64,000 bases of DNA from Macrostomum lignano (taxonomy: Eukaryota), in NCBI GenBank assembly GCA_002269645.1, contig NIVC01003077.1:29949-93948 (forward strand). Reading direction: 5' to 3'. Position numbers and translations under genes: made by a program. The notes beneath the pieces were generated by a model, which was given only the letters and a program-made list of their open reading frames with translations, did not search any database and was not told the origin of the DNA. Below, piece after piece: positions 453-62,545 of this stretch (position 1 is the stretch's first letter; each line of letters begins with the position of its first letter).

Positions 453-3400
453 GTGAGTCTGGCGACCATTTCTTTGCTACTAATAGTAATATATCTTTTT
501 GCAGCCCATTTAGGCTTACGCGCATTGAATTTAATCAAAAATGCGTTTGCCAATGTAACGAAGCTTTTGTCTATGGTAGCAAGGCTGGCACAGCGGCATT
601 TCATTTGGTCCAACAAGCATCAATTTGGTCCATTTTTTTATTAGAGGCAGGGGGGTTGTGTGCACCCTGACGCACTTCAAGCGACATAGGCACAAAACCG
701 GCGAGAGGCATTACTGCCCATTCCGCCGACTCCCCTGAGCAGGCATACAAGCGCGCGGATACGTATGCAGGCACACACTCACACAGGAGTGTACAGCAGC
801 CCTAACTTTATTTTATCGTTAGGCATGTACACTTCACTGCGCCTTGGGGGTTGGCTCTCAAGGCCGTTAATTGCACGAGCAGAGCCAAGCCGAGATTCCA
901 ATTCAGCCCCAAATTAATGTGACTGCACTTGGAATCGAGCCTGGGTCGCTGGCACACCAGAGCCTGCGCTAGACCGCTGGGCTACGGCCCCCCTTCAATT
1001 TGGTTCATAGCTTCATTTGCAACTGCTGCGGAGGAGCAAGCTCAGCCCCAGAATTGTAGACCATATGCTAGGCTGTCGAACGAATGCCATTGGCTTGTGA
1101 TCGAAGCGCTCGACATAGGTGAACAACCAAAGGACATTGCAGACGGTTGCGAGAAGACAAGAGTTTGTCGAATGGCTTACGAGCATTTGGACCAAAGAGA
1201 TGCTTGTTGGACCAAATTAAATGCGGCTGTGCCAGCCTTGCTACCATAGACAAAAGCTCCGTTACATTGGCAAACGTATAAAAAAGCAGATTTTGGTATT
1301 TTGGTTGCTAAATAGACTGTCCTCGAAGCATACGCTTGTAATTTAAGCTGAGTCATGGAGGGGCAAAAACTCTGAGTTGTGATAAAATACACAGGGTAGG
1401 ACTTGAAACCCAAGAAACCGTTTCAGCATTGTAAAAGCTGGAATAGATGGCCTATACAGTATGCCGGGGTTGTTTCTACTTCGTATTTCATCCTGTCAGT
1501 CACGTATCGCCATAATCTTTCGCAGATTTCAAAGTCTGGCCGGCTGTACGCTCTGATCATTCCGGAGGCGTTTCCTGAGGACAGCGGCAAATTTCTAGTG
1601 CGAGTTGTTAATCCGTTCGGCAAGGACGAGAGCCAGTGCCAGCTAAGGGTGCTCGGTGAGTTTAAATAGCATGCCGGACATGAGCTGATGCTAGAGCAAT
1701 AGAGCATGATTGCCGTGCCGTTTGCAAAGCACAGAGATAATTTAGCGTAATTTTTTAATCCGAGCTGGCTCCTGTACGAGTGTAATGTGATTTGCGATCA
1801 GACTAGACAAATAGGGGTTGCATTGTCCCACGCATTCAAGGCTACTAAAAATACATTCGTGAGACAATGTGCTTGTACAGATGGTTCTGTCATGAACAAT
1901 GGATAAATAATCAACAGTCCAAGTGCGTGAGTGTTGTCAAGTACTGCGACCGCTGATTCTTTGCATTGTTATGCTGCTTGACGATCATTGTTTGTAGTAA
2001 TGGATTGTTCTGCATAAAAATTTGAATAATTATAGTCAAATTGCTAAAAGTTGCTAGTCACTTGTTAAAAATTCAATCATTGTCTGTCTCTAAACCATAG
2101 ACGCAGTTTACAATTGTATGCCTCTAAAACCATAGACACAACCGACCATTGTCTGCCTCTAAAACCACAGACACAACCGACCATTGTATGCCTCTAAAAC
2201 CATAGACACAACCGACCATTGTCTGCCTCTAAACCATAGACGCAGTTTACAATTGTATGCCTTTAAAACCATAGACACAACCGACCATTGTCTGCCTCTA
2301 AAACCACAGACACAACCGACCATTGTATGCCTCTAAAACCACAGACACAACCGACCATTGTCTGCCTCTAAAACCATAGACACAACCGACCATTGTATGC
2401 CTCTAAAACCATAGACACAACCGACCATTGTCTGCCTCTAAACCATAGACGCAGTTTACAATTGTATGCCTTTAAAACCATAGACACAACCGACCATTGT
2501 CTGCCTCTAAAACCACAGACACAACCGACCATTGTATGCCTCTAAAACCATAGACACAACCGACCATTGTCTGCCTCTAAAACCATAGACACAACCGACC
2601 ATTGTCTGTCTCTAAAATCACAGACACAACCGACCATTGTCTGCCTCTAAACCATAGACGCAGTTTACAATTGTATGCCTTTAAAACCATAGACACAACC
2701 GACCATTGTCTGCCTCTAAAACCACAGACACAACCGACCATTGTATGCCTCTAAAACCATAGACACAACCGACCATTGTCTGCCTCTAAAACCATAGACA
2801 CAACGACCATTGTCTGCCTCTAAAATCACAGACACAACCGACCATTGTCTGCCTCTAAAACCATAGACACAACCGACCATTGTATGCCTCTAAAACCATA
2901 GGCACAACCGACCATTGTCTGCCTCTAAAACCACAGACACAACCGACCATTGTCTGCCTCTAAAACCACAGACACAATCTACCATTGTCTGCCTCTAAAA
3001 CCACAGACACAATCTACCATTGTCTGCCTCTAAAACCATGGGCACAATCTACCATTGTCTGCCTCTAAAACCATAGGCACAACCGACCATTGTCTGCCTC
3101 TAAAATCACAGACACAACCGACCATTGTCTGCCTCTAAAACCACAGACACAATCTACCATTGTCTGCCTCTAAAACCATGGGCACAATCTACCATTGTCT
3201 GCCTCTAAAACCACAGACACAATCTACCATTGTCTGCCTCTAAAACCATAGACACAATCTACCATTGTCTGCCTCTAAAACCACAGACACAATCTACCAT
3301 TGTCTGCCTCTAAAACCATGGGCACAATCTACCATTGTCTGCCTCTAAAACAATGGGCACAATCTACCATTGTCTGCCTCTAAAACCATAGACACAACCG

Positions 3401-6400
3401 ACCATTGTCTGCCTCTAAAACCATAGACACAACCGACCATTGTCTGCCTCTAAAACCATAGACACAATCTACCATTGTCTGCCTCTAAAACCATAGACAC
3501 AATCTACCATTGTCTGCCTCTAAAACCACAGACACAATCTACCATTGTCTGCCTCTAAAACCATGGGCACAATCTACCATTGTCTGCCTCTAAAACCACA
3601 GACACAATCTACCATTGTCTGCCTCTAAAACCATAGGCACAACCGACCATTGTCTGCCTCTAAAACCACAGACACAATCTACCATTGTCTGCCTCTAAAA
3701 CCATAGACACAACCGACCATTGTCTGCCTCTAAAACCACAGACACAATCTACCATTGTCTGCCTCTAAAACCATGGGCACAATCTACCATTGTCTGCCTC
3801 TAAAACCATAGACACAACCGACCATTGTCTGCCTCTAAAACCACAGACACAATCTACCATTGTCTGCCTCTAAAACCATGGGCACAATCTACCAGATCAC
3901 ATCGCTAATATCAGTCACATGATTTGGTTCAAACGATTTAAACGAATCTTTGTTATCGAAAAACAAGTTAGCGAGCTTTTCGCCCAAGATTGCCACTCGA
4001 ACGAACGTGAGCTTAAGTGACACTATAGTACGAGTAGTCCGTGAGTTTTGTATGTTCCAAAGATTATTTTCAGTAAACTTGCATGTAGATTGCATGCTTT
4101 TTTAAAGTATGAGTGACTGGCTCCAATCTAGTAGGCAGTTTCTAGTAGAGGCATACCTGCTAGGTAAAGCAGGTAAAGCACGAACTTGTATTTAAATTTA
4201 TCACTCGTTGACGCTTGCACTTTTTCATCATGCAATCCACATATACTATATATGTGCAACACGTACGGTACTAGCCAGGTTCAGCATGCCCCATTGCATG
4301 ATTAGCTGTTTGATTCAGCAAGTTCATCTACTGTCTGTCTAAAGACGCTTTATTGCTGTGCCATCTTCAATTCTGCATGGACTTTTAAATAACATTGGTG
4401 AGTTTTTGCACGCTGTTTTATATCCCTTAAATTTTAATGCAATGCCCATAGCGTTCTATAATACTTCGGAGCATCTGGAGGAAAGGGTCGATCACCGAAA
4501 TTACAGTTCCAACCTTGCTAAGATTCTAATAAAAACTTTATCATTAGCAAGACCACTAGTAGAGTCATTAGCAATATCGTTAGTAGGATCATTAGCAAAA
4601 CCATTAGCAGGATCGTTAGCAAGACCATTAGTAGGATCATTAGCAAAACCATTAGCAGGATCATTAGCACGACCATTAGTAGGATCATTAGCAAGACCAT
4701 TAGTAGGATCGTTAGCACGACCATTAGTAGGATCATTAGCAAGACCATTAGTAGGATCGTTAGCAAGACCATTAGTAGGATCATTAGCAAAACCATTAGT
4801 AGGATCGTTAGCAAGACCATTAGTAGGATCATTAGCACGACCATTAGTAGGATCATTAGCAAGACCATTAGTAGGATCGTTAGCAAAACCATTAGTAGGA
4901 TCGTTAGCAAAACCATTAGCAGGATCATTAGCACGACCATTAGTAGGATCATTAGCAAAACCATTAGCAGGATCATTAGCACGACCATTAGTAGGATCAT
5001 TAGCAAGACCATTAGTAGGATCGTTAGCAAGACCATTAGTAGGATCATTAGCAAAACCATTAGTAGGATCGTTAGCAAGACCATTAGTAGGATCATTAGC
5101 ACGACCATTAGTAGGATCATTAGCAAGACCATTAGTAGGATCGTTAGCAAAACCATTAGTAGGATCGTTAGCAAAACCATTAGCAGGATCATTAGCACGA
5201 CCATTAGTAGGATCATTAGCAAGACCATTAGTAGGATCGTTAGCAAGACCATTAGTAGGATCATTAGCAAGACCATTAGTAGGATCATTAGCAAAACCAT
5301 TAGTAGGATCATTAGCAAGACCATTAGTAGAATCGTTAGCAAGACCATTAGTAGGATCATTAGCAAGACTATTTGTAGAATCATTAGCAAGAACATTAGT
5401 AGGATCATTAGCAAGACCTTTAGTAGGATCATTAGCAAGACCATTAGTAGGATCACTAGCAAGATCATTAGTAGGATCATTAGCAAGACTATTAGTAGGA
5501 TCATTAGCAAGACTATTTGTAGAATCATTAGCAAGACCACTAGTAGGGCAATCGGCCATTGAATAGTGAATAGTATTCAATTCTCGCTTACAGTCGTGAA
5601 GCTCAAACGTAAACTAACGCAAAAACATTTCAGAGGTCATCGCCGAGCCGGTGATCCCCGAGTCGCCGCCGCAGCTGGTGCAGAAGTTTCCGTCTCAGAT
5701 CAAGTGCCCGCCAGGCGCCACAGCCAAGCTGGAGGTGCAAATTGGCGGCCACCCGAAGCCGACTTTCGAATGGTACCTGAACGGCAGGGCCATTAAGACG
5801 TCGAAGAAGCACGAGATTGTTGAGAACCAGGGCAGCGTCACGCTGCTCATTTACAATGTACAAGCCAACGATGCCGGGGCCTACATCCTGAAGGTGCAAA
5901 ACGACCTGGGCGTGACCACCTGCAAGACTCACCTCACTGTCGATATGCACCAGGCGCATATTAACATTCCGTTCAGCGAACTCAAACAAAAACAGCAGTC
6001 AAAGATGACTTTTCACATCGATAAGGTGCCTCTGCAACAGCTTGTAAACCTAATGTCGTCCGTTGAGTTCTCGCTGAAGTTCCTGCAACCGCTTGCTGAA
6101 CAGTATCGCGTACCTGAGAACAAGACCACTTCCCTCTACTGTGAAGTGCAATCCGAGCCCCCGGCTCAGTTCAAATGGTTCGTCAACGGCATCGAAATTA
6201 TGCCGTCCAATCACGACTTCAAGGTGCACACGAAGCGCAACGTGTCGGAGCTGAAGATGCTCCAGCTGCGACAGCAGCCGCACGAAAAGACAGAGCTGGT
6301 GGTCGAGGCCGCCACACCCCGCGGAAAAATCACCAGCGTCGCTCAGGTAATCGTATCGAAGGAGGCCAGCGATCTTGAGACATTCACGTCGTCGGCGACA

Positions 6401-9400
6401 ATCACGCCCACTTTCAAGATGCCGCTAAAGCCTGTGGTGGTGACGCAGCCCAAGAAGGCTACAGTGCTCGAAGTTGAGGTTGAGGCGCACCCGCCAGCGG
6501 ACTTTCGTTGGTTTAAGAACGGCATCGAAATTACGCCGTCGCAGAAGTTCGAGATTCGCCGGCCATCGCAGCACCGGTCAGAACTGCACATCCGGTCGGC
6601 TGACCTGTCGGACATGGGCCAGTACACGGTCGAGGCTACGTCGGCCATCGGCCGGGCCACCTGCAACACCGTGCTGCAGGTTGGCGATGAGCTGGCCGAG
6701 CCGGCGCTGGTTACGGAAGAGGTCCGCCTACAGCAGGTGTCAGCCCTGCACAATGTAATCCGCGCTCTGAAGCGATCCACCGCGTTGCTGTTCTGCAGCG
6801 TCACCGGTACCCAAGAGCCGGTCAGCTTCCGCTGGTTAGTGCAAGGCGAAGAGGTACAGCAATCCGACAAGTTCGCCATCAAATCGGATGGCCATCGATC
6901 CGAACTAGCAATAAGAAAGGTTGACGAATCAGATGTTGGTGATTATATATGCGAGGTGACCTCGTCGATCGGCCAGGTGCAAGCTGTTACCAAGCTCGAG
7001 GTAATTGAAGAGGAGACCACTGGAGAAACCGCATCCGTAGAGCCACAAACGGTTGTTGCTTCGCAAGAGTCGCCAGCCTTCGTGCAACCTCTGACAGATA
7101 TGCAAGTGTACGACGGCGATGAAGTTGTACTGAAGTGCTCCGTCAGTGGGTCTAAACCCATCAAGGTTGCATGGTACCACGACGACAAAGACATCACCAA
7201 CGCCGAGGACTTTGTCATCAGCTTTGACGAGGAGTCTGGAGTCGCGTCGCTGGTTATTGTCGAAGTGTTCCCAGAGGATCGTGGCGTGTACAAATGCGTG
7301 GTTGAAAACGTACACGGAAAGTCAGAGACTCAAGCTTTATTGCAAGTAGTAGCCCAAGAGCCCGCAGCTGAGGAATCAGCAGCGCCGATGGAGACAGCAG
7401 CTACGGAGGTTGAGGCAGCGATTGATCAGGTGGATTCAGCTCAGATGGAGACTGCCGCCACTGAGGAAGCTGTGCAGGTGCATGAGGCGCCTGCAGAAGA
7501 AAAGCCAACTGTCCTGGCCGAATGGGAGACTTGGGAGAAGATTGAAGACAGCGCAGAGGCAACACTGGCGCCGAAAGAAAAGCGATTAGACCAGGCGGAG
7601 CTGCTGGCAGCATTCGACACCCCCTTTGAATTGCCAACTGAGACCGAGACTGAGACCGAGCCAGTTGAAGAGGATCAACTCGTGTCGGTCCAGGTGCCCC
7701 TCAAAGAAGCGGCTATTGACTTCGATCGCATTTTCGGTGCTCCAAAGGAGGATGAAGAAGCGGCTCCCATGGAAACGGCGCCTGTGGTTGAAGAAGCGCC
7801 AAAGACAATGGAAGCCACGGTTGAAGCTGAAGCCGATGTCACAGCTGTGGCGCAAGAGGAGGCGCCCGTTCACATTGACACATCAGACGACATCAAGGAG
7901 GGAAAACTAGAAGAGGTGATCCCAATGGACACTCAAAGTGTAGACCTGTTCTTTGAAGAGCCACTGCCGAAAGAGATGCTTGCCGTCATTGGCGAGGATG
8001 TAACGTAAGTTTTATGTTGGATGAACGTACTCGTAGCTCGTATTTAGTGTAAAAGAAAGAATTCTAAAGTTCTTGACTGTACTCAAAAATAAACATTTTC
8101 TAGGTGCTGAATTTACGACTTTCACAATACCCACATCAATTTAAATATGCTTTGTTAATTCTTTTCAGTCTCCAGTGCCTTGTTCTTGGCACCCAGCCAA
8201 TCGAGGTGTGCTGGCTATTCGAGAATCAGGTTGTTGCCCCCAGCAACAGGGTTCAAATTGAATACTCAGCCGACAGTGGCGTGTGCCTCTTGAAGATTCA
8301 CCGAGTAACGCTGCAGGATAGCGGAGAGTACGTATGCGAAGCCACTAATATTGCCGGCACCGATGAAACGTTCTGCGTTCTGACTGTCACAAGTAATTCT
8401 ATTTCATATTGTTTGCATTAAACGTATTCGCAAGTCCAGGTTTTAGGGGAGCTTGGGAGTTGGGTTACTCTACTAGTTGAATAGAAAATATGCTAAAACT
8501 AATTTCTAAACCCTAAAACTACGCAACCCTTTATTAGATACCGAAACCGGCCAGACTGAAGTTGTCGACTTCGAAGTATCCGAGGACGTTGCTGACGCAG
8601 AGCTGAAGGCGGCCAGCGTCGGTCAGGAGCAGCAGTCGGAAGCCCTAGCCAGCAGCGAGCAACCCGAGTCGCAAGCAGCTCCGCAACAGGCAACCTTGGC
8701 CGAAGAGAAGGCAGAAGACGTTCTGGAGGCCACCCAGGAGATGACCGAGTCGGAACTGGTGCCTCCCGTGTTTGAATGGGCTCTGCAGCCGCTGAAAGTG
8801 ATGGATGGCGAGGAAGTGAAGTTGACATGCATTCTGCGCGCTAATCCGATGCCGCTAATGGTCATCTGGTACAAAGACGATGAAATCATTGAAGAAAGTA
8901 ACGATATTGAAGTGTTTTATAGTCCAGAGACGGGTGAGTGCGAGCTATGGATTAGCGAAGCATTTCCAGAGGATACCGGTACATACAAAGTGGTTGCCAC
9001 AACACCGTACGGTAAGGCGATCACAGAAGCAAACCTCACAGTCGAGCAGTACGAGTACGTCTCTTCTGCAGCACCTTCGTCGCATGGATCGCTAGGTGAG
9101 GAGCTTCAAGAAGGCCCCGTGCCGCTGCAAGAGGCCGTTGTGGAAGAGGCGCCAATGCAGGAGATTTCTCGAGTCGAAGAAGTCCGAATCGAGAGCTCGC
9201 CCGAAGCGGCTACCGCAGCTACCGCAGTTTCAGACACAGTCGAAGTGCTCGCGAGCTCCGCTGTGTCTGCAGCAGCGGAGGCAACCGAGGACGCGAGTGT
9301 CTTTGAAGCCGAAGTGACTGAATCGGCTACTCAGCAAGAAGAAGAGTTTACACTCGACGCGACAGCTGAAACCACTGAAAAAGCAACTATGAAGGCTTCG

Positions 9401-12400
9401 GCGACCCTCAAAGAAGAAACCCAGCCTGAGGAGACAACATTCGAAGCCGATGCAGGTGTGGAAGAGTTTAGTGCAACTTCTACGGCAGAAGTGGAAGCTC
9501 CAAAAGCTGAACAGGAAGCACAGGCTTTTGTGACTCAGGAGTTAGAGGAGCAACAACCACTGGATTCAACAGAAGCCGACATGGCACCAGTAGAGGAGAT
9601 ACAAGCAGAAGCCGAAGAAACCATGGATAGCAAAGCTACCCCAGTTGTTCAGGAGCCGCAGCAGTACGTCAGTCATGAAATTGTTGAGGAGCAACCGGTT
9701 GATGCAACTGCTGATGAAGTTGCACCTGTCGAAGAACTTCAAGCGGAACCTGAAGAGACCCTTGACAGCAAAGCCGCACCAGCTGTTCAGGAGCCGCAGC
9801 AGTACGTCAGTCATGAAATTGTTGAGGAGCAACCGGTTGATGCAACTGCTGCTGAAGTTGCACCTATCGAGGAGCTACAAGCAGAGGCCGAAGAAACCAT
9901 GGATAGCAAGGCTACCCCAGTTGTTCAGGAGCCGCAGCAGTACGTCAGCCACGAAGTTGTTGAGGAGCAACCGGTTGATGCCACCAGCAACCAAATAAAT
10001 AATCCGCCGCCGGCGAACCAACCTGTTAACCTGCACATTATTCAGATCAACCTGCACCACGCCCTTGCAGCATCTAGCAACCTTTCAGGCACCTTTGCCA
10101 ACAAGGAAGTTGACATCTACCTTATTCAGGAACCGTATACCCGCAAGGGGAAGCCGACCTGCCTGCCGCCAGGCTATCAGGTTCTGTACCTCTGCGCGAA
10201 CGACACCCCCAGAGCTATCGCCCTCGTCAAAAACGACCTCCCGGCCACTATTATGCCAATGTTTTGCTCTAAAGACATGTGTACTTTCTCAGTCTTTGAC
10301 TTGACCTTCGTTTCCGCTTACCTGGACATTCAGGAGGACGTCCCTCCCCCCCTCCTGCAGGAGCTGGCGGACTTCTGTAATCTCCAGGATCGGAAGCTTA
10401 TCGTTAGCTGCGATGCTAACGCCCACAACACTGCCTGGTCTAGTAGCGATACTAACAGGCGCGGTGACTTACTAATTGATTTCATTAACTCCTCCTCGTT
10501 ACACATTTGCAACAGAGGCAGCAAACCCACATTTATTGTCTCTAATCGGCGTGAGGTTATCGACCTCACTCTCGTCTCCAACAACGCCCTCAATCAGGTC
10601 CACAGCTGGCTGGTTAGGGATGACCTCCCATCGCTTTCCGACCACTCGTACATTCAGTACAGCATCAGCTCCGTCGGAGCCCGTCATGAGAACCGGGACC
10701 GCCTTAATTTGAAAAAGGCCGACTGGACAGGTTTTCGAAGAGACCTGCTAAAACTCCTGACCGAAGCCAACTTACCGGACTCCAGCGAGGATCTCCCTGG
10801 CATTGAGCATCGGTGCAACTCCCTCGTTGAGATCCTAAACACCGCCATACGCGCTAACGCCCCTAAGCTGTTTTGCAGGAAGAAATACTCTCCTTGGTGG
10901 AGTCAAGAGCTCACTCGCATGAAGAAAAACACCCGCCGACTGCAACGCCTCGCAAACGGCTCGAATACCCCAGAGGATTGGGAGAACTACCACTCTGCTC
11001 TGAGGATGTACAAAAGTGCTATCCGAAGGGCTAAGAAGACCACCTGGAAAGCCTACTGCGCCGGCCTGGAAGGGCAACACCCCACAGCCCGGCTGGTCAG
11101 GACTCTCAGGCACGACACGCTAGCTCAGTGTAACTCCCTTCTGCACCTGGATGGTAACTACACTACCAGTGCCGAAGGTTCGCTAAATCTTCTTTTCTCC
11201 ACCTGCTTTCCGCAGGTTGACGAACCGGAGTACGTGGTCGATGACCACAGGCCTTGTGATCACAAGCTTTTCCAGCAGTGCGCCACCCCCAGCTACTCCA
11301 GCTGGCAGCAAATTCTTTTAAACCGTATAAATCGTCTGGCCCTGACAATATCGCCCCCTGTATCCTGCAGGAGGCGCTAAAGCTGCAAAACTTTGCTGAT
11401 TCTTTCTCTAAATTGCTTGTTGACTGTTATACCACAGGTTACATTCCCACAATCTGGAGAATGTCCAGAGTCGTGTTCATCCCGAAACCTGCTAAGGGTG
11501 ACTACACCAACGTGAAATCCTTCCGGCCCATCAGCCTCACTTCCTTTTGTGTTAAGCTGATGGAGAGGCTCATCCTGTGGAGGCTTCGAGAGTGCGACCT
11601 GCGCTCCGACCCTGTCAGTAAGTACCAGTACGCCTTCCAGCCTGGGAGGACGACTGAGCATGCTCTCCACGCCATTACCTCCAAAATTGAGAGTGCCATC
11701 CTTAGCAAACAACTCGCTTGCGGGTTGTTCGTTGACTTCGAAGGAGCATTTGACAATGTCCTCTTCCGCTCCTTCAGAAATTCTCTTTCCCGCAGGAATG
11801 TAAGACACAGCATTGTTCGCTGGATTTATTTTATGATCCGCAAAAGGTTTGTGACATCCACACTTATGGGCGTTACCCTCACCCGGGCGGTGATGAAAGG
11901 CGGCCCGCAAGGTGGCGTGCTAACTCCACTTCTCTGGAATCTCGTCATGGACGAACTTCTAACCGCTGACATTCCCAGCAGTATCACCAGGGCGGGCTAC
12001 GCCGATGACGTTGCCGCGGTCGTCAGCGGACCCGACCCCGCCACTCTGCGCAACCTGATGCAGCAATTCGCCGACAAGGCGGCCGACTGGGCTACACAGC
12101 ATGGCCTAAAAATCAGCGTCACTAAGACTGTCGCTGTCGTTTTCACCAAGCGCCGTAAATGGGAGATGAAAAACCTCACTGTCTATGGCAGAAACATCCC
12201 CTTCAAGAAGGAGGTCAAATACCTCGGTGTGACGCTAACGCATGACCTGCGCTGGACGAAGCACCTTGATAACGTCATCGGTCGGGCAAAACGCTGCTTT
12301 GCCCAGCTGCGCAGAGCCATCGGGCCGACTTGGGGCCTCTCGCCTAGAACGGTCCGTTGGATTTATACCGGCATCATCCGGCCCAGTATCACATACGCGA

Positions 12401-15400
12401 GTCTCATCTGGACTAGCGTGCTGGAGCAGAAGGCCGCCCGTCAGCGGCTGTACCAGCTTCAGGGCAGCATTTGCCGTGCCATCACAGGTGCGTACCCGTC
12501 CACCCCTTACGAGGGGCTGAACACTATCCTTAACCTACCTCCGCTTCACCTATTTATTAGGGCGGAGGCTATGAAGTCTGCCTCCCGGCTTATCAGAGAT
12601 AAAACGTTAAATAACGCGCCCTCTGGCTTTATGCCAATGAAAACATTAATCCCGCATATGGACTTTGTCCGCCGCGACCTTAACAACATCCACATGGACC
12701 TGGGCAATGTGGATAGTCGACCTCCCGCCCTCAACATCAGGAGGGGCTTCAAGACCGCCATCCCTGGCCGAGACAACATTCCGCTGGATGTCGGTGTGAA
12801 CCGGCGCAGCCAGGGCATTCACTGCTTCACCGACGGCTCGCTGTTCAACGGCCGCGCTGGAGCGGGTATTGCCATTTTCCACGAGGGTAAGATGCTTCTC
12901 CAGGAAAGTCTGCACCTCGGTGAGAACACCTCAGTTTTCCAAGCTGAAATTTGCGCCATTGAGCAGTGTGCCCAGCAACTGTTTCAGGCGAACATTAATA
13001 ATTTTGACATTAATTTCTACACTGATAGCCAAGCTGCTATTAAGGCCTTAACCACTGAGAATATCTCCGCTGCTACAGTATCTCAATGCCACCGCAGTGT
13101 GCAATCTCTCTCAGTCCTTAACAGGATTAGAATTATCTGGACACCTGGTCACAGCAACATCCTGGGCAACGAGCTCGCGGACTCTCTCGCCAAGGAGGGC
13201 AGCAACCCAGACGGCAACCACCGTCTGATGAGGCTACCCACCCCCAGGTCGCAAGTCACCCGCCATATCAACAGGTGGCTCCATCAGCAGCACCAGCTCC
13301 ACTGGAACAGCTGCACCGAGTACAGGCAGAGCCGCTCTGCCATGCCTAACCTGAACAGGAAAGTCTCTGATTATCTGATTTCGCTTAACAGAACCGACCT
13401 CAGGGAGATGTGCATGGTCCTAACCGGCCACGGATTCTTCCAGAGACATATATCGTTGCAAACCGGTTGCCCTCCCACCTGTCCCTTCTGTGGCATAGGA
13501 GAGGAGACCGCGGAGCATCACGTCACCTTCTGCCCTTACTTCAACAAGGCGCGGCACAAATACCTCGGCCACCCCCAGCGGATGGACGAGCTGACCACCG
13601 CGGACAATATCCGAGACCTCCGCGCCTTCGTCCGGGACTCCGGCCGGATGAGGGTCGCCGATGCCTCCACTGCGGACCTGCCGACTACTGGCGGGGACTG
13701 GGCGCACCCCCAAGGCTAATCCTTGTGCTCTTTTACCTTGGGGTTGCGATAGGGGCCTCGCGGCCTATTCGCGGCGCCTGCGCCCCCCGTCAGTAGTAAG
13801 CAGTAGTAAGTAACCGGTTGATGCAACTGCTGCTGAAGTTGCACCTATCGAGGAGCTACAAGCAGAGGCCGAAGAAACCATGGATAGCAAGGCTACCCCA
13901 GTTGTTCAGGAGCCGCAGCAGTACGTCAGCCACGAAGTTGTTGAGGAGCAACCGGTTGATGCAACTTCTGATGAAGTTGCACCTGTCGAAGAACTTCAAG
14001 CGGAACCTGAAGAGACCCTTGACAGCAAAGCCACACCAACTGTTCAGGAGCCGCAGCAGTACGTCAGTCATGAAATTGTTGAGGAGCAACCGATTGATGC
14101 AACTGCTGCTGAAGTTGCACCTGTCGAAGAACTTCAAGCGGAACCTGAAGAGACCCTTGACAGCAAAGCCGCACCAGCTGTTCAGGAGCCGCAGCAGTAC
14201 GTCAGTCATGAAATTGTTGAGGAGCAACCGGTTGATGCAACTGCTGATGAAGTTGCACCTGTCGAAGAACTTCAAGCGGAACCTGAAGAGACCCTTGACA
14301 GCAAAGCCGCACCAGCTGTTCAGGAGCCGCAGCAGTACGTCAGTCATGAAATTGTTGAGGAGCAACCGGTTGATGCAACTGCTGATGAAGTTGCACCTGT
14401 CGAAGAACTTCAAGCGGAACCTGAAGAGACCCTTGACAGCAAAGCCGCACCAGCTGTTCAGGAGCCGCAGCAGTACGTCAGTCATGAAATTGTTGAGGAG
14501 CAACCGGTTGATGCAACTGCTGCTGAAGTTGCACCTATCGAGGAGCTACAAGCAGAGGCCGAAGAAACCATGGATAGCAAGGCTACCCCAGTTGTTCAGG
14601 AGCCGCAGCAGTACGTCAGTCATGAAATTGTTGAGGAGCAACCGGTTGATGCAACTGCTGCTGAAGTTGCACCTGTCGAAGAACTTCAAGCGAAACCTGA
14701 AGAGACCCTTGACAGCAAAGCCGCACCAACTGTTCAGGAGCCGCAGCTCTACATCACGCAGGAAGTTGCCGAAGAGGCTGCAGTTGATGCGACTGCCACT
14801 GAGGTCGCGCCGATCGAAGAACAGACTGTCCAATCCGATGATACACTTGATACCAAAACAAATATCACTGCACAAGAGGCACAGCACTACGTCACTCAGG
14901 AAGTGGCGGAAGAACAGCCTGAAGAGTCCTTTTCAGAAGGCATACAAGAGAAACAGTCGACTACCGCTGCCATTCAAGAAGAGATGCCTGCCGACCAAAG
15001 TGCTGCCGAGGTGCAAGAGGCCCAACAATACGTCACTCAAGAGGTAGCTGATGAAACTCCAGTGGACGTTGCTTCAGTAGAACTTGCACCAGTTGAAGAG
15101 CAAAAGGCTGAAGGTGAAGAAACTCTCGCTGCCCCAGCTAAGCCAGAAGTTCAAGAAGCTCAGCAGTATGTAACTCAAGAGGTAGCTGAGGAGCAATCTG
15201 AAGACACTGTCACGCAGGACCTTCAAGAGAAGACTCCAGCTGTTGCTGCTGTACAAGAGGAACTACCAGCCGATGCTACAACAACTGAAGTTTCTGCCGT
15301 CGAAGAGATTCAATTAGAATCTGAGGAGACTACCGATGCGCAAGCGACTTCTACGATGCAACAAGCTCAGCAGTACCAAACTCAAGAGGTCGCTGAAGAC

Positions 15401-18400
15401 TTCTCACTGGAAGAAGCTTCGACAGAAACCGAACAGAAGCACGAAGAGCCCGTTGCCGCTGAGCCAGTAGAAGTAGAAGAAGTCAAAGGCGATAAGAGCG
15501 TCCAGCTTCAGCCGACCAGTACAACCGAGCAAGAAGAGGCTCTCCCGATAGAGGAAGTCGGAGACATGGAGGCGAAGAAGCCGCTGCTTGTAAAAGAAGA
15601 CAAAGAAGAAGTTCCAGAAGAGTCTCTGGTAGAGCAGCAGCTTCAGGAGATGCAACTCAAACCTGCAGAAGAAACTTCGAAAATGGAAGCTGCATCAGCA
15701 GCAACTGAAAGCGAAAAGGCAGAAGTTCTTACTGCTGAAAGCTCTGAGGAAACTGCGGCTGATGCCAGCATTCAGCTAGAGTCAGAAGCTACAGTTGAAG
15801 AGGAATTTTCTGCTGAAATTACTGCCACAGAAGTTGCTCCAGTAAAAGAGATGCATGTAGAAGCTGAGCAAACTCTCGAAAGTGAAGCGACCTCCACGGT
15901 CCAGGAGGCTGCAAATTTTGAAAGCCAAGAAGCGACTGAAGAACTAAAAATGGATGTTGCATCTGCTGAGATGGCTCCCATTGAGGAGAAGCAAGCTGTT
16001 TCTGAAGAAACTGTAGAAAACAAAGCCGCTTCTACTGTTCAAAAGCCGCAAGAGTATGTTACTCAAGAAGTTACTGAAGAAGCTTCTGTGGATACCCTGG
16101 AAGCCAAAGTTGCACCAATCGAAGAGCTGCAGGCTGAGTCACAAGAAACTGCCCAAGCAGAAGCGGCATCAACCAAAGAGGTTGCGCAACAATACGTGAC
16201 TCATGAGGTTGCAGAGGAAGCCCCAGTAGATGTCACAGCTGATGTTGCGCCAGTTGAAGAAAAACAAGCTGAGACCAAGGAGACGCTTGATGCCAAGGCT
16301 GAGTCAACTGTTCAAAAAGTTCAGGAATACGTCACTCATGAAGTAACCGAAGAAGCACCTGTAGATGTCGCAACTGACGAACTGTCACTGGTTGAGGAGC
16401 AGAAGGCAGAAGCTGAAGAAACACTCGCTACCCCAGCTAAGCCAGAAGTTCAAGAAGCTCAGCAGTATGTAACTCAAGAGGTAGCTGAGGAGCAACCTGA
16501 AGACACTGTCACGCAGGGCCTTCAAGAGAAGACTCCAGCTGTTGCTGCTGTACAAGAGGAACTACCAGCCGATGCTACAACAACTGAAGTTTCTGCCGTC
16601 GAAGAGATTCAATTAGAATCTGAGGAGACTACCGATGCGCAAGCGACTTCTACGATGCAACAAGCTCAGCAGTACCAAACTCAAGAGGTCGCTGAAGACT
16701 TCTCACTAGAAGATGCTTCGACAGAAACCGAACAGAAGCACGAAGAGCCCGTTGCCGCTGAGCCAGTAGAAGTGGAAGAAGTCAAAGGCGATAAGAGCGT
16801 CCAGCTTCAGCCGACCAGTACAACCGAGCAAGAAGAGGCTCTCCCGATAGAGGAAGTCGGAGACATGGAGGCGAAGAAGCCGCTGCTTGTAAAAGAAGAC
16901 AAAGAAGAAGTTCCAGAGGAGTCTCTGGTAGAGCAGCAGCTGCAGGAGATGCAGGTAAAACCCGCTGAAACAGGTGCATCTGCCGACACAGCTCCAAAAG
17001 CAAAAGCTCAAGAGGTCCGAGCGGCTAGCCTCCAAGAGCCGATGGAACAAGAAATGGCTCAGGACATCACTGTGTCTGACGACTCCGACTTTATTGACTC
17101 AGACTTTGAAGAGGTAAAGGTTGAGTCAGACATGGGCCAGGAGTCAGTGACCAAGATGCTTCTGGAGCAGCAGAGCCTGCTGCAAATAGCTTGCGTCGAC
17201 GATTCCGAACGGCTTCAATCTCTGCCAGAAGCATCCAGCGATCAGCCAGAGGTGGCTGCTGTCGATGAGATCGCCATGACTGAGAAGCCGGAAGTCAGTG
17301 CGCAGCAGCCGGATGTCTTGGAGGCGCCAAAACCAAAACTGTTTGTCACACAAGAGCTCAAATCTGTTGAGGTGTTTGAGACAATGGACATCCTACTCGA
17401 GTGCGCGGTGACCGACCTACCGCAGCTGAGCGTGGCCTGGTTTCAGGTAAGCAATATCTAAAGCCGAACTGTTTTCTAACTAGTTTCTTTGACCTAGAAC
17501 GTTTTTAATAAAGCAGCGTCAAACTTGCACTCCAATAATGCAGAATGAAATGCCAGTGAAAGCGGATAGCCGTCACTCCGCTTTTTACACTGCGGGCGTG
17601 TGCTCGCTGCAGATTGTATCAGCCACCGCTGACGACTCTGGTGTGTACAAGGTTAAAGTGTCCGCCGAAACGGGAGAGAGTGTGTCCACCAGTGCCGAAG
17701 TTCAAGTTATGAGTGAGTACTTTGCTGTTTTTACAAACTCCGGTCAAGGTCTTCTAGGCGTATTAGTTTCTACAGCAATAGGGTACTATCTAGAAAATTT
17801 CGTATGCTCGTAAAGAATTAGCTGAATTTCCTTGAAGGTCTACGCGACTGCGAATTGCACGAGGACATTGTCATCACGGAGCGTCGAATTTACTACTATT
17901 GGGACGCCAGGCATCATCGCACAGAGTGTCATAACTAATAGCTATTAACTAGCAATGCTGCTCATTTATTGTATTCTCGTGCACATTGGCAATGCTATTT
18001 GGCAGCTCGGCACTGTTTATTCTGTACTTTTGTCACATCGCACATTAGATGGAAAATTTATCGATTTTCTGTACCGCGAATATTTAGACTTTCGTTTATT
18101 AGTTGCACTTGTTGCTCTCAGCTCAGTGAGAAGCTCAAGCCCCAAAAACTGATGGCTGGCGGCATCGCGCTTTCGCCAATAGTTCTCAGAATCGTTGATC
18201 AACCCTCTGCCAACAAATTCATTGCAGCGAAAGAGAAGCCAAAGGAGGCGCCAGAAAAGGCTCAAGGTAGGACTCCAATAAAAATTCTCGCGCACACGCC
18301 TGCATGCAAACCCGAAAGCCAGTGTATAGCAATAAATCACGGGTCGCTTTGTTTTTTCTTAGACTTCCGCCTCGAGACACAGCCAACCTGCATGCCTGCC

Positions 18401-21400
18401 TGGCCATCAGTTTCTTTGGCTTTTTGTAAATTAACCCCCATACTGACAAACAAACTAAGGTGTTTTAAAACACTAGCTTAGTCGCATGTACGAAACCGAA
18501 ATTATTGTGCGTCCTATTATTGATTAATAAGGTAACTATGCATTGTTTGACGTGCTTTTTAAGTGTTTCGCTATCGTAAATATAGCTCGTAGTAACACTA
18601 TGATAATAAAGTACCCGAATTTTCCTCAGTATCAGAGTCTTGCATGCGGCTCTATTCTTGACTCGCTATGTACGTTTTTCTCCAACCATTGTTTATCGGA
18701 GTTACTCTGGGATATAACCAGATTTTGTTTAAATTGCGCGCTCCGCATGCTCAACAAGTGTTTTAAGTAAAAAGTCGGAAAACTACTGTCAACTGAACGC
18801 CAATCAGTCATTTGGCAATCGCACATCATTTTTACGCGCAACTCAACCGACAGCATCGTTTCTGATTTGTGCGATTATTTCAATAATAACTAGGCTTTTA
18901 GTTGGTCCTCTACTGTCGTCACTGGAGCCAGTCACGGGGTGGTTAATTGCAAAGCATAGTAACAGAAAATTTGCAATCCAACTGACAGTGCTACCAGCCG
19001 AAGCCAAAGCATCCAGGCTCAAACTGCTAATTAGCGACATCGACGAAGATACGGACTCGCTAGTGCCGAGTCCGCTGTCCTGGCGCAGTCCCGTGCCCCT
19101 CAGCTCCCTCAGCGTGACCATCAGCGATGATTTCGATCCGTTGGAGCCCGGCTTCACACAACTGCCGCCAACATATGTCAGCGTATCCTCCGGTAGCCCC
19201 GTGCAGCTGCGCTACGCCTTCCGACCAGCCAATTGTAGCGTTGTCTGGACGTTCGGCGAATCCACGCTGCCAGTAGATGTGCATATTCACACCTATCGGA
19301 GCGAAAGGTTAGATGCAGAGTCTGAGACGGTGCTGCAAGTGCAAGTTGCTCGAGCTGGAATTCACGCTGGTATCTATTGTTGCGAAATCTCGAACGACCA
19401 CGGGTTCGAGTGTGCCCGCGTACAGCTGTCTGTTGCCGATCCCGGCTGGGGTGGCAACGGCAGTCTTGACTGGGAGGGTGAGGAAGTGGCCTCAATGGAT
19501 TGCAGCGCGGTCACTCAAATCAGCTAACTCTTCTCGGTATAGCGTTGCATAACTTATAATTGATAAAAACGTGCTTTAGTTGCCTAGAATTGCTTTTAAT
19601 TAAATCAACCATTACTGATATGCGCATTAACGAGATAAATGATTGTTATTAAAAGTTGCTCGTAACAAGCTGTAGTCAATAACAACTGCGATAACTCACT
19701 TGAGTAGAAGGTATTAACTTTTTAATCTGTTTCAAAATTAGAAGTCTTCCGCGTGCGTACACGTGACGGCTTAAATAAAAAGTCTTTCTAATCCTTAATC
19801 CCCGCAGAAGAGACAATCGACGTCTCCGTTGACACGTCAGCCAAGGAGGTGCCCCAGGAGGCAGCAAAACTGTCCTTCGACGTTGACGCTGACAGCAAAG
19901 AGGCGCCAGATGAACTCGACTTCAGCGTGGACGCAGACATCCAGGCTGAGGAGCCGGAAGTTGAAGAGGAGCCAATGGCGCCGGTCAAGCAACCGGAAGT
20001 TGAAAAACGTAAGTTATTTGGATTTCGTTTCAAAGCTACTTAAAGTTTTTTTCTTGAAAGTTTTTCTTCACTTTTAAGTCTTTCATTCAAAACGGTAATA
20101 GTACTCATTAGTCCTTTTACCCGTACAATTTCTTGCTCACCATTCACAGCCCGCACGGACTTCGACGCCTCCGTGGACACCGAGGCTCGCGCCGCGCCTA
20201 AAGAATCTGCAAAGTTTACAGCCGACGTTGACGCTTCGACCACGGAGGCCACCGAAGCCGATTTCGAAATCAGCGGCAGTGGCGAAGTCGAGGAACAGCC
20301 GCTGGCTCACGAGCAGGTCACTCTGGCCGAGGCTGAACCTGAGGAAGCCGCCGCAGATTTCTCCGCCGAGCTGGAGCCGGAACAGAGCACCGAGTCAGCT
20401 ACAGCTCAGCTCAGCCAAGCGGTCGCCAAGCCCGCCCCGGTCATCCTGCAGGGCCTACAGCCGCAGACGGTTATCGAAGGTCAAACTGTTGAATTCCACG
20501 TCGGATTTGAGGCCCACGAAGAGCAAGCGGTGGTCACATGGCTCAAGGACGGCGTCAAACTCGCTCCTAGCGAGCGAATCAGCATCGAGACCCGGCCGAA
20601 GTCAACCAGCCTGCGCATTCAGGAAGCAACAAAAGAGGACATTGCGGAGTACTCTGTGTCATTGTCGGTGGATGAGGATACGGAACCAGTTGTCTCAGAA
20701 GCACGGCTGACTGTTGAGAAGAAGGGTGAGTCATGATGAAGTTTTTCCCAGTCTGAGTTCGTACTTTAACTTCAATTCAAAAATTTGAGTTGATTATAAG
20801 CACTGATCACAAATTTACAAATTTCCTCATTTTAGACAAGCCAGCAAAGTTCACTGACCAGTTGGTCTCAAAGACAGTCAAACTGAACGAGAAAGTGATT
20901 CTGGAGGTCAACTACGAAGGCTACCCGCAGCCGGACGTTGTCTGGACCTTCGACGGCAAAGTAGACTGTCAGACTGACGAAAGGTATTTTTCGAAATTGA
21001 AATTTCCGATCATATAAGCAATTATTTCCTTGTTTCGAGAGTATTATTCGTTAATTGATATTTAATCGACGCTTTATGCGCAGATTCACAGTCACCGTTG
21101 ACAACAACGAGCAACACGAGGACGCTTACGTGACCTACCTGAGCATAGAAAAAGCCACCGAAGAGGTCACCGGCAACTTCACTGCCACTGCGACCAACAA
21201 GGCCGGCAATGACTCCGTCAGTTGCAGCGTCAACCTCGAGGAGCTAGCGCCCAGCTTCATCAAGCCGCTGAAGAAGCCGTCTGACGGTGCCAAAGTAGAC
21301 GCAGATTTCACTCTGACTTGCGAATTCGACGGTCGTCCAACGCCAAGCATCAACTGGTACGTGAACGGTGAACTAGTAGAGACAACCAGTAAGCGCTACC

Positions 21401-24400
21401 GGGTGACCGTTGAGCACAGTGTCACCACGCTGACCATCTTGGGCGTATCCGAGGCCGACAATAATGTTCCAATCACCTGCGTTGCAAGAAATCGCAAAGG
21501 CGAAGCGCAGACGGATACCACGCTGCAGGTCGAGGGTGAGTTCAAGCTCGATGATTTTTCATCAACATACGAAAGCTTTGCTTTCTATTCGAAGCGCGCG
21601 ATTTATGCATGGCATGCTGCCTCCTTTGACACTCCTACTAAATTATAACTCTTATTAGGTAGTTGACACTTTTCTGATAATAACAGCATGCATCTAAATA
21701 GAGCCAACTCAATTAACTACGTAAATAAAATTAAGTGCTCATCTTTCAGTTCTCTCTGCTTGCTAATTTCTAGACCGCACAAGAATAGTTTGCATGCTGC
21801 TCCTACTGTCCTTCGCATGCCTGCTCGCTCTCCTGCTCGACCTGCTCCTGGCCTGAACGACATACCGCTGATAACGCAACTCAAACTACGATTAAAATAT
21901 TCAAATTAGAATTCAAATGCCTCTGCGATAGGGCACAGAACTCGTCATATGCAATTATTTAAAGAAAAGGTATTAAATTTGTTTGAACTCTTAAATTTAG
22001 TTCAAACTTTTTTAATCAGCTAATATTTATTAAAAAGTTCAAAGTCGTTTGTTTATTAATAATAAAGTTGATGACAAACAAAAAATTCCTAAATGTTTAC
22101 CTAATTTCCTTTTATTTTTTGTTTTCTAGTCCTTTCCTATTGTTTTGAATTTTATCAATAATAATTTCTTTACCTTAATAATCATCATTCAATACTACTA
22201 ATCCACTTGATGAGAATTCCGATATACTTTTTTATATTTTTATTTCGCTAAAATTAGTTTATCAAAATTAGTTAATTTATTACTTGATACCAGTAAAACA
22301 TCTAAAAAATTATTATAATGGTGCTACTGACGAGTAGATCATGCCAATTGAAACAAAACACTCGAACTGTTAACTTTGCGCGCGTCCACAATTTAGAGAT
22401 TAGCTGTTTGTTTGTTCATATCGCATTGCTTGATAGTCCTCACGTTTCAGATCTGTTTAACTGTTTCTAAAAGAATCTGTGATATTCGGCACTGAATTTT
22501 TACTGTATTCTGTCTGCTGCTCTTGTTTGACACTTTTTCAATTACTTTGTTATAATATTCTGTGCATTGTATTGCACAGATCAATTGTATTTTGCTTGAG
22601 TTACGGGATAAAATATATATATCCAAATTAAATACGCATATCCCTATAGTGTGTGCCTACTATACAAAATCGCAGCTAATATTTCCTGTTTAATATTAGT
22701 TACTCGTAGACGCACATGCAGTGACATCGTGTCGTGTGCATTATGAAATTTTTTGCATATTATTGCACGCTATGTTAAATAGTGCTTTAGTAGCCCTTTG
22801 CTCGCAGATCCCAAAAGCCTCTGAATTTAAGCTTTCTGAATGAAATTCATCGACTGTATATCGTTGAGTAGATTTTGTAGCTGGTGTTGCACTTCTAAGA
22901 AAGCGCGCTGTTCTAATTCTGCTTCTGCAGACGCTATGCGATCGTTGTAAATATTATAGCGCTATTCCACCTGTTCTAATAAATTAGGACGACTTTAAAC
23001 TGCCACTATTAATCCGGACATCTAAGCGGCTTTAGAAGTTATGAGACACCCGGCTATTTAGCTAGTCGCAGTCTTTGGGCCCTGCAGCAAATCTGCTGAT
23101 GGGTGACCCGCAGCCAGTGACGAGGCAGTTGTACTTTCCGTTGCTCATTGCCGGTTAGCCCAAGTGAATGGTACGAATACTACTCAATCCCTGGGTAATT
23201 TTCGTTCACGATGAGACTGCACGCGGAATCAAGTTCGGGGAAAGTGCATTTCGCTTGAGAGTCGGTTCCGCTCCGCTACTCAATCCCTTGTTTCAACCGT
23301 GACTACTACATGTACTATTGAGGGCTAGATGGTTTTGCTCCCCGGTACTGTTAGCGCAGTATTTTGATGTCGGAAAGCAAAATAGATTAGAGTGGTGTAG
23401 AATTTTTTTACTTTTCTGTTAAAAATCTATTGTAGTTGCCCTGCAAGATGCAACTGGTGAGCTGCACGAATCAACTGAGCCGCAGCAGCTTGAGATGCCG
23501 CAGGAAGGCTGCACCGAGTTGGAGGACAGTGAGCCGACTCTGAGCACTATTCAACCAACCACAACGGCAGACGATTTGAACAAGGCCGAGACTAAAGTTA
23601 GTAGCTTTGAGGTCATGGGTATTGAAGAGCAGTCCGTGGAAGAAGAGCTGCTATCTTCCGAACAGGCAGTGGGGTACCTCCGTCCGAGCAACTCGAAGTG
23701 GCTTTAACTCCTGCTGTACCTGATGCAGCTATGGCTGAATCTATGGAAGAGGCCACGACTGCGCTACCACGTCAGGACAGCACCGAAGAGGCTGCCCCGA
23801 GCGAAGGTTCCGTTTCCAGTGACGATCAGTTCTACGAGACTTCGGCAGGGTTCACAAAGTTCGAAGACGAAGTTCGCCCTGAAACTTTGTCGCAGCTGGC
23901 TGACAAAGAGTACGACTCGATAGAACAGCAAACAGTCAAGAGCAGCGAGGTAGTTGCCAAGAAAACAGCAGAACAGCTGCATTTGCTAGCGGATGAGCTC
24001 AACATCGAGCCTCACAGTCTGGACGTTATCGAATCATACGAGGAATTCACTGCGAAGAAAGAAAACAGCGAACAAACATGGTGCTATGCGACTTCCGTGA
24101 TTGTCACAAAGCGCTCCAGTGTTTGCACAGAGCAGGTTGAACTTACTGGCACTGAGGAAATTTCTGTTCGGGAAACTGAGGCTGACACTAAAAATATAGC
24201 TTCGGAATTTCTTGACGCCAAAGTGAAACAACAACCGGAAGTCAAAGAGCTGAAGGAGCACTTAGAGGAGAAAAAAATAGCAAATCAGCAGCAAGAACCA
24301 CTGGAAGCAGATGAAGTGAGTGTGCCGCAGTCCTCCACAGAAGACTTCCAGAGCGAGACAACAACTGAATCGGCAGCGCAGTCTACTGAAAAAGCACATC

Positions 24401-61229: not shown

Positions 61230-62545
61230 TTACAACGCTTTGTAAAACTTCTTCTCCAGTTCTTCATCGCTCCAGAGTTTCAGTCCAGCTTGGAGCTTGA
61301 AGTTTTGCAGTTCAAACAATTTCATTGGGCAAGACAGGCAGTACATCTTTTGCTTTTGTTCTGTCATGCTTCTCATGATGAATTCGGCTCTCTGGGCCTG
61401 GCTTTTAATTATCTGGGCGCCAGACTGCCGGAACTTATTGGAAATCACAACCAGAACGTCACCGGCATCGGCGACTGCGGTGGCCCATTCCTGTAGGTAA
61501 GCGTACTTTTTTCCAGCGTCAAAAGGCCAGTTTTTAACTCAATTTTTTTCGCACGATTAGCAGGCTCAGCCGTGTGATCTAGAACAGCTTCCCTCACAAC
61601 ATCATCAAGGGAAGACTTGAATGATTCGAGCTCCCGAAGTTCCGCTTCCAGCTTCTTCACCACGTGAGTCCACGCTGTCGGTCTCAGCTTGTAAGTAATT
61701 TCCTCCAGAGTAGTCAGAGCTTCTTTCAGCACATCGTAGCAGCGAACAGTTTTAGAGATGCACGTGCGCGGTAGTGGCAGGGGAGCTGGTGGAGCGTCTT
61801 CAACCAGCAGTGACAGAGGAAGCAGAGTGACCGTCAGTGGCGATCTAGCTTCAGCCGCTTGGATTGTTTGAATGCACTTCATGGCTTCAATGAAGTCGGT
61901 CGGTGGGCTGGCCAGGTGGAAGTCTCCTTTGTAGGCAACCCGGATCTTCTGCAGGACTTTTGTTTCCTCCGACGTCATGTCAAGCGAGGCAGCTCCAGAG
62001 ATGCTGACCACCGATGCAAACTTGCCAATATCAGCTTGCAGACGGCCTCCGGTTTTATCGCTCGTTGCGGAGTCTTCTCTGTCCCGCTCAAAGAAGAACA
62101 GTGCGGCTCCGCCGTACTGAATTCCCATTACTACGTGAGTCGCATCTTTGTAGCTCGCTGAGCTCTTCAGCTTCCAATCTGGTGGGAGAACAAGTTCCCA
62201 ATACTTTCCTTGAAATTGCAATCGATATATGGCACTCTCCGTCTCTTTCTTCTCTTTTAATGCAGTCTGATAGTTCCCGGAGCCTTTAGCCGAAACTAGT
62301 CCCGATAAAATTGACAGCGACAGATTTCCAGTCACTTTTGTGCTCAGGTTTTTGCTGTTCGCTGACGTTTCTGTGACGATATCGGTCTCCATGCTAATTT
62401 TCTTAGTTTCGGTCAGCATAGCCTGCATCTGCTCAGTGGTGAATAACTTGACTCCGGGGATGATTTGGCTGTCCTGCTGTTGTACAGCACACCAAGGGTG
62501 AATGGATGACCAACGGCAGGAATGGTGAGAGAGCGCGATGTTCAT
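61230..62545 (-). CDS. Second stonustoxin-like MACPF/CDC gene, with apparent frameshifts near 62541, 62464-62466 and 61507-61512
   Basis: IIPG, SLSILSGLVSAKGSGNY, ATHVVMGIQYGGAALFFF, YKGDFHLASPPTDFIEAMK, LTVTLLPL. The N-terminal IPAVGHPFTLGVLYNSR lies in an alternative frame. Confidence 0.8.

Follow-up and report, generated by a model that had tools for sequence, protein, structure and literature searches.

A long interspersed nuclear element (LINE) lies within a coding exon of a giant, immunoglobulin (Ig)-rich, muscle-type gene of Macrostomum lignano, and the insertion is very probably a recent, incidental retrotransposition rather than a functional chimera. The window (the whole 64,000-nt stretch of DNA that was analyzed) is NIVC01003077.1:29949-93948 of assembly GCA_002269645.1 (Mlig_3_7); positions are counted in it unless a contig is named, and features are listed in Table 1. 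The original prediction, drawn from the letters of the window, had described a sense, in-frame, 5'-truncated LINE with a complete pol, and domains, motifs, and the reading of open reading frames (ORFs) bore this out. Its further proposal of a titin-endonuclease-reverse transcriptase-RNase H chimera is not supported by the sequence as assembled, in which the fusion stops at 11380, before the reverse transcriptase (RT), or by the paralogs, which are without the insertion. Nothing indicates a selected titin-pol fusion.

The insertion was placed among its gene copies by protein searches. A protein of 5,074 residues (P0130) was recovered by exhaustive search with the host portion of the exon; word-indexed searches with the empty-site exon and with the Ig exon at 5651-8008 gave distant Ig proteins only. 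Neither the RT ORF nor P0130 matched any contig in an exact look-up. The 90% cluster of P0130 holds three proteins of GCA_002269645.1, one of which (P0282; 6,790 aa) maps exactly onto the window, with the other two encoded on NIVC01000648.1 (L003) and NIVC01004506.1 (L004). Each of these two contigs aligns to window positions 5332-9981 and 13809-20000 at ~98% identity with nothing in between, and the alignments break exactly at 9981 and 13809 (empty sites). The gene copies are distinguished by 28 mismatches per 4.2 kb (~0.7% of sites). The insertion is specific to one of three homeologous copies, and the fusion is not conserved in the paralogs, as both loci have the empty site. Rescue by a paralog or homeolog, which had been suggested earlier, is directly supported by these two contigs: the empty homeologs would buffer the organism against loss of the filled copy. 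The assembly derives from DV1, an inbred polyploid line, for which three paralogous subgenome copies with ~1-2% substitution divergence and indel-dominated differences have been described (PMC10733133), in a recently polyploid genome of ~75% repeats (PMC10733133).

A perfect 151-bp direct repeat flanks the LINE, the right copy beginning with the last two bases of the element, and the LINE tail and the target overlap by 2 nt (AA). The element's own 3' tail, its 5' truncation, and the direct repeats of the target are together the signature of target-primed reverse transcription (TPRT), which argues strongly against a chimeric assembly. The direct repeat could be a 149- to 151-bp target-site duplication or an 11- to 13-bp one between two identical units, and we consider these about equally plausible. 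The target is an array of 138-bp units (46 residues, rich in E/Q/V/A/P), and identical neighbors such as the units at 14228 and 14366 arise naturally in it. The paralog arrays were compared for the duplication length: the window has 11 units (9557-14917), or 10 if one is the duplication, L003 has 10 (31933-33312), and L004 has 13 (25667-27460), and the unit order differs. The L004 array carries a three-unit higher-order duplication. Such variation in units among the three gene copies points to unequal exchange that is still going on in this putatively elastic region. Pfam matched nothing in ~1,500 aa of acidic sequence of the exon; the region is lysine-poor, and a PEVK-like elastic character is putative. 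A segment of ~640 bp of the acidic exon is present twice, ~1.3 kb apart (15027-15670 and 16326-16969).

The ORF2 of the insert covers residues 8-1216 of its 1235-aa relative P0007. The PF14529 match of the endonuclease (EN) lies at residues 537-653 of ORF 8696-11380 (positions 10304-10654), and the EN catalytic motifs (N, E, D/N/H, and SDH) are present. Related full-length elements carry ORF1 just upstream of ORF2 (525 aa in L001 and 288 aa in L002). In L001 it ends 24 nt before ORF2, in both relatives a few to ~30 codons separate its stop from the EN motif downstream, and in the closer of the two, ORF2 is without an ATG of its own. The copy in the window retains at most 21 nt of ORF1. Judged from these relatives (44-55% identical), the truncation point would fall almost exactly at the ORF1/ORF2 boundary, an estimate that depends on distant relatives because no full-length copy of the same family was obtained. 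The nearest relatives outside Macrostomum, at that identity, come from metagenome and Logan contigs. Proteins from other M. lignano copies (P0001 and P0002) are 98-100% identical to the LINE product, including a 610-aa stretch identical to P0002, and because of such identity to several M. lignano proteins the family is young and multi-copy in this species. No other copy of the LINE was found in the window or in the paralog loci. Domain order and tail give the LINE an I-superfamily architecture, with a putative clade assignment. A canonical AATAAA hexamer lies on the sense strand 12 nt into the insert (9993-9998), in the ORF1-tail region; through it, host transcripts that keep the LINE might be polyadenylated prematurely. 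In addition, several M. lignano database proteins (P0015, P0016, and others) join RNase H pieces of the LINE (95-100% identity) to unrelated domains of the host, PF07699 and RGS (PF00615) among them, and chimeric LINE-host gene models seem to be common in M. lignano annotations.

The host frame (...VVEEQPVDA) continues into the LINE without a stop in ORF 8696-11380, as had been claimed. An in-frame insertion is a 1-in-3 chance, and the read-through is statistically unremarkable because of this prior and because relatives likewise have no stop in the ORF2 frame ahead of the endonuclease. As assembled, the fusion ORF consists of host sequence, endonuclease, and linker, with no RT and no RNase H. 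No uninterrupted ORF runs from the host domains to all LINE enzymes, since the frameshift at 11286-11290 and the stop at 11380 precede the RT. This frameshift is the single lesion that the original prediction had named: P0001 and P0002 read through the site, the window would do so with a single base added within or beside the C5 run, and protein comparison with other copies and P0007 found no further frame break in ORF2. The lost base is either a C (C6 to C5) or the third base of a Pro codon; the protein comparison fits both.

The course of events that we infer extends from the TPRT mechanism and the truncation point relative to ORF1 to paralog buffering and transcript fate. A member of the young, multi-copy LINE family would have inserted by TPRT into the 138-bp acidic array of a titin/sallimus-like gene. 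At a point just ahead of the ORF1 stop, reverse transcription probably ended or the 5' end was attached, which left the copy with all of ORF2 but without ORF1 and promoter. It landed in sense and, by the same 1-in-3 chance, in the host frame; with one of three homeologs filled, the organism would have been buffered against the loss. Transcripts could then have the LINE spliced out between weak cryptic GT and AG sites of the adjoining repeat units, as in the deposited model. Otherwise they would retain it and terminate early, at 11380 in the assembled sequence or, should the frameshift be an assembly error, at 13719. A premature stop far upstream of many exon junctions is a context for nonsense-mediated decay (NMD), and LINE-retaining transcripts would be expected NMD targets. 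Some points weigh against this reading. The paralog contigs show one-base frameshifts in coding exons; should these be genuine, the copies that are to provide the buffering would themselves be damaged. The annotated intron, given its weak donor and the 148 of 404 GT sites in the exon that score at least as high, may have arisen in mapping as an artefact. Finally, the LINE clade, assigned from domain order and tail, is putative.

A bypass of the element by splicing had also been predicted, and in general form this stands: the deposited model P0282 removes the LINE as a GT-AG intron. It does not do so by the proposed exon skip from 8392 to 17544, which is out of frame (the join A/AAT GAA reads AAA TGA). 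Skipping of the whole exon as a rescue is ruled out, as it breaks the frame (the exon has phase 1 at its start and phase 0 at its end). Half an Ig domain also lies in this exon. In P0282, the exons around the LINE are 8540-9973 and 13919-17446. The annotated intron (GT at 9974-9975 and AG at 13917-13918) comprises the entire LINE together with 8 nt to its left and 105 nt to its right, and the product reads ...HEVVEEQP and then host repeat, with the frame restored.

It is conceivable, at somewhat below an even chance, that the LINE now acts as a newly gained spliceosomal intron and that the filled copy stays functional. The donor (CCG, then GTTGAT from 9974) would come from the left repeat unit and the acceptor (CCGCAG, then C; AG ending at 13918) from the right, duplicated unit, with a gain of 12 aa or a loss of 34 aa in a disordered repeat region. 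Precisely this junction is annotated in P0282, with canonical GT-AG ends and an intron length divisible by 3, and random borders would combine GT, AG, and frame only ~1 time in 768. The annotation was built from BLAT-mapped de novo transcripts and from RNA-seq with STAR, StringTie, and TACO, followed by TransDecoder, with no ab initio predictor (PMC5730564), so that junctions derive from STAR, StringTie, and BLAT evidence. Simple cross-mapping from a paralog does not obviously yield this junction either: the alignment of an empty-allele transcript would have to bridge 3,981 or 3,843 nt rather than 3,945 nt, and since AGGT does not occur in the 151-bp repeat, an aligner cannot slide the 3,981-nt gap to canonical ends. 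We derived no artefact path from simple cross-mapping of empty-allele transcripts to the 9974-13918 junction.

The strength of the splice sites tells against intron gain. In a position-weight model built on 18 genuine introns of the gene (leave-one-out), the annotated donor scores -1.4 bits, below all 18 real donors (1.1-11.6 bits), and has T at +3 where every real donor has A or G. The annotated acceptor (1.7 bits) ranks within the bottom sixth of the genuine ones. Cryptic donors of greater strength lie close by (8934, 9012, and 9096) and are unused, and no other repeat unit is spliced in the model although the same motifs occur in every unit. Moreover, reads are hard to place reliably given the repeat array and the three paralogs, and 93% of M. 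lignano read pairs map to multiple sites (PMC10733133). Repeat-overlapping transcripts were discarded before deposition (PMC5730564), and a LINE-retaining isoform would for that reason be absent from the deposited models. We regard it as doubtful that one LINE retrotransposition into the coding array made a new intron in one step, with the duplicated units supplying cryptic donor and acceptor. That the 3.9-kb insert is spliced in frame and the gene copy survives with a 12-residue change, which belongs to the same one-step scenario, is likewise rather unlikely.

The filled copy may instead be a dying homeolog, one of three redundant copies that the LINE knocked out after whole-genome duplication and that is becoming a pseudogene; splicing and a fusion product would then both be irrelevant. 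We consider this possible but unlikely. The empty sites of the paralogs provide the redundancy, the weak cryptic splice sites fit a loss of function, and the indel-dominated divergence between M. lignano paralogs reaches up to 5.5% of coding sequence (CDS) length (PMC10733133). Yet ~34 kb of host reading frames in the window remain open, including one of 3,110 codons, and the flanking repeats are identical at 151/151 positions, which leaves little time for decay; no other lesion is visible, and a deposited transcript-based model implies a transcribed locus.

A further alternative takes the frameshift for an assembly error and ORF2 for intact; an unspliced mRNA would then specify a protein of Ig domains and acidic repeats that continues into the complete EN-RT-RNase H, the chimera of the original prediction. 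As a whole, this is improbable. One-base losses in C runs do occur in host exons of the paralogs. One lies in the coding exon of both L003 and L004 at the equivalent of window position 8237, a site through which P0130, an independent record of the same haplotype type, reads. At L003 9548, C4 became C3 in an EVFPED motif, upstream of which the gene model of that contig is cut, and at L004 26995, C5 became C4 in one repeat unit. The contractions truncate deposited paralog gene models; P0280 and P0281 share the same C-terminal end. The pattern looks like systematic homopolymer error in Mlig_3_7 or early homeolog decay. Mlig_3_7 was assembled from PacBio reads with Canu and polished with Pilon, most short reads multi-map, and the 3.8-kb LINE has as many C/G runs of at least 5 (8 runs) as ~34 kb of host coding sequence (8 runs). 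From the similar lesions in the paralogs, the type of assembly, the multi-mapping, and the density of C/G runs, we estimate a probability of about one half that the frameshift of the LINE arose in assembly. The rest of ORF2, with its 610 aa identical to P0002, is intact as this alternative expects. Its weaknesses lie elsewhere: the stop at 13719 would be far upstream of dozens of exon junctions, again an NMD context; the deposited model shows removal and not retention, albeit after the filtering of repeat-overlapping transcripts; and the frameshift common to L003 and L004 could be real and inherited.

Finally, a junction created by chimeric assembly in a collapsed tandem array is very improbable, even though tandem repeats and three near-identical paralogs are hard to assemble and the unit counts differ (10, 13, and 11), and we ruled out misassembly on the TPRT hallmarks (3' tail at the junction, 5' truncation, and perfect direct repeats of the target), to which the colinearity of both flanks with the paralogs can be added.

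The host gene lies on the + strand, with Ig exons from the start of the window. I-set matches are as strong as 9.4e-89 in the exons between 57 and 8392, and many more occur in P0282 (Pfam). Pfam also showed Ig/Fn3 repeats and a protein kinase downstream on the same strand. The original claim that the allele loses its kinase stands in part. The kinase is indeed downstream, but it belongs to a separate gene model from ~29.1 kb; because of this separate annotation, its loss depends on an unproven single transcript. Of the two deposited models at the locus, P0282 ends at 21856 and a 7,876-aa Fn3/Ig model from ~29118 holds the kinase. Long unannotated open frames between them (21856-29118) encode acidic disordered sequence and then Ig/Fn3, and the split may be an artefact, with one giant gene at the locus; the locus may otherwise have alternative 3' ends. 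The kinase has its best match to twitchin (1koa, 3.7e-35), with titin kinases at 1.7e-27 and weaker, and the gene model that bears it is twitchin-like rather than titin-like.

In the models P0130 and P0282, the Ig array is preceded by an N-terminus with ~900 residues of spectrin-type repeats (PF00435, DUF7799), which lies upstream of the window (L005:7381 onward). Such an N-terminus is atypical for a titin-like protein and may reflect a fused upstream gene. "Titin-like" seems fair as a description of architecture, with orthology not demonstrated, and "titin" would be a loose name, given the spectrin repeats at the start of the gene model. Within the same gene, the intron at 1656-5633 (3,978 nt) holds two minisatellites, at 2078-3894 (35 bp x 52) and 4540-5547 (24 bp x 42), whose copy number differs in the paralogs; GC skew reaches -0.45 over 2-4 kb, at these minisatellites. 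Downstream of the giant gene are two minus-strand ORFs, 57958-59985 (675 aa) and 61445-62614 (389 aa), for which Pfam gave no match even at E = 0.01.

Table 1. Features of the LINE insertion, its host exon, and the surrounding gene (window positions unless a contig is named)
Feature	Position	Strand	Basis or remark
LINE, 5'-truncated non-LTR retrotransposon, EN-RT-RNase H-CCHC	9982-13813	+	3,832 bp
Host-to-LINE junction	9981/9982	+	GGTTGATGC then CACCAGCAACC
LINE-to-host junction	13813/13814	+	AGTAAGTAA then CCGGTTGATGCAACTGCTG, after LINE sequence
Putative ORF1 tail, HQQPNK then stop	9982-10002	+	frame other than ORF2; three-frame translation against L001 and L002
Apurinic (AP)-type endonuclease domain, in host frame	10037-10760 (3' bound approximate)	+	PF14529 Exo_endo_phos_2, 3.6e-22
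EN motifs	IIQINLHH 10037-10060; LIQEPY 10121-10138; SCDANAHN 10406-10429; SLSDHSY 10631-10651	+	
C5 run, one base missing relative to other copies	11286-11290	+	frameshift between EN/linker frame and RT frame
TAA ending the host-EN fusion frame as assembled	11378-11380	+	29 codons past frameshift
Reverse transcriptase domain	11479-12237	+	PF00078 RVT_1, 1.1e-30, residues 68-320 of ORF 11278-13719
RT YADD box	11998-12009	+	direct reading
RNase H domain	12817-13203	+	PF00075, 7.1e-13, residues 514-642 of ORF 11278-13719; D-E-D-D motif
C-terminal CCHC zinc knuckle (CPFC...H....C)	13480-13533	+	direct reading
ORF2 stop	13717-13719	+	
LINE 3' untranslated region, TAA-type tail, no poly(A)	13720-13813	+	ends GTAGTAAGCAGTAGTAAGTAA, abuts host sequence
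Left direct-repeat copy	9831-9981	+	exact 151-nt backward match
Right direct-repeat copy	13812-13962	+	exact match
Short duplication candidate	9969/9971-9981	+	(AA)CCGGTTGATGC
Intron of deposited model P0282	9974-13918	+	GT...AG, 3,945 nt = 3 x 1315; exact P0282 mapping
Spliced junction	9973/13919	+	GAGGAGCAACCG joined to CAGTACGTCAGCC
Very large Ig-rich exon	8538-17446	+	8,909 nt; acceptor AG 8536-8537, frame continuity; donor GT at 17447
Left host-exon part	8538-9981	+	one I-set Ig (Pfam 9.4e-17), unique acidic spacer, three 138-bp units + 11 nt
First three 138-bp units	9557-9970	+	TRF period 138
Right host-exon part	13814-17446	+	eight more 138-bp units, longer acidic region, half Ig domain at end
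Further Ig exons	to ~21.9 kb	+	
Unannotated ORFs between gene models	23698-25422, 25488-25931, 26501-28090, 28108-28899	+	acidic at 23.7-25.9 kb
Ig/Fn3 super-repeats	26.5-49 kb	+	Fn3/I-set ORFs
Protein kinase	~50.3-51.3 kb	+	Pkinase
C-terminal Ig domains, after kinase	to 54.4 kb	+	
One-base C-run contractions in paralog contigs	L003:9548, 30614; L004:24348, 26995		

The locus shows what a polyploid, transposon-rich genome can tolerate: a LINE with a full pol in the coding sequence of a giant muscle gene, with two homeologs as a buffer. If the splicing is real, repeat-rich "spring" exons can absorb a LINE, and the case would be one of intron gain by retrotransposition and an invertebrate parallel to the mdm mouse discussed below; if, in addition, the frameshift is an assembly error, the new intron would also host an intact ORF2 transcribed from the promoter of a muscle gene. 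This raises the question of whether a promoterless ORF2 is expressed from a host promoter. The locus also calls for caution, since C-run frameshifts in Mlig_3_7 affect host exons as well, and neither "single-lesion" transposons nor truncated gene models should be taken at face value.

Elements of the I superfamily (the Drosophila I factor and Nimb/I-like elements) have an ORF2 with AP-endonuclease, RT, RNase H, and CCHC knuckle, end in TAA-type 3' repeats without poly(A), make short target-site duplications, and are frequently 5' truncated. The M. lignano LINE resembles them in ORF2 order, TAA-type tail, and 5' truncation, a likeness of architecture only as far as the clade is concerned, and a target duplication of 149-151 bp, if real, would be unusually long for the superfamily. 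Exonic L1 insertions in human genes, such as those in factor VIII exon 14, similarly combine a 5'-truncated LINE, a target-site duplication, and a disrupted frame. Those are de novo disease alleles, whereas the M. lignano insertion is fixed in the assembly of an inbred polyploid line and buffered by homeologs.

Introners are insertions that, together with the target duplication, supply splice sites. Most resemble DNA transposons; they are short, number in the hundreds, and bring or generate strong splice sites. Should the deposited model be correct, donor and acceptor here would likewise lie in the left and right copies of a duplicated target. In contrast to introners, this is a single 3.8-kb LINE with weak, pre-existing cryptic sites and predicted splicing. 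In domesticated host-transposon fusion genes (SETMAR and transposase-capture genes), an N-terminal host part is in frame with a transposon enzyme, as in M. lignano, but those fusions arose by splicing to a captured exon and are conserved under purifying selection. The fusion described here does not occur in the paralogs, its frame is broken in the assembly, and it cuts the host protein short.

The closest precedent is the mdm mouse, in which a LINE lies in the N2A-PEVK elastic region of Ttn and causes aberrant splicing (PMC9482285, PMC7312179), as the M. lignano LINE lies in the putatively elastic part of its host. In mdm, exon skipping removes 83 residues, and the diploid animals have a severe, recessive disease (PMC9482285, PMC7312179). 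The M. lignano insertion differs in that it sits inside one huge exon, where skipping of the whole exon is out of frame and the proposed bypass uses cryptic sites in the repeat units, and in that two further copies of the gene are unaffected.

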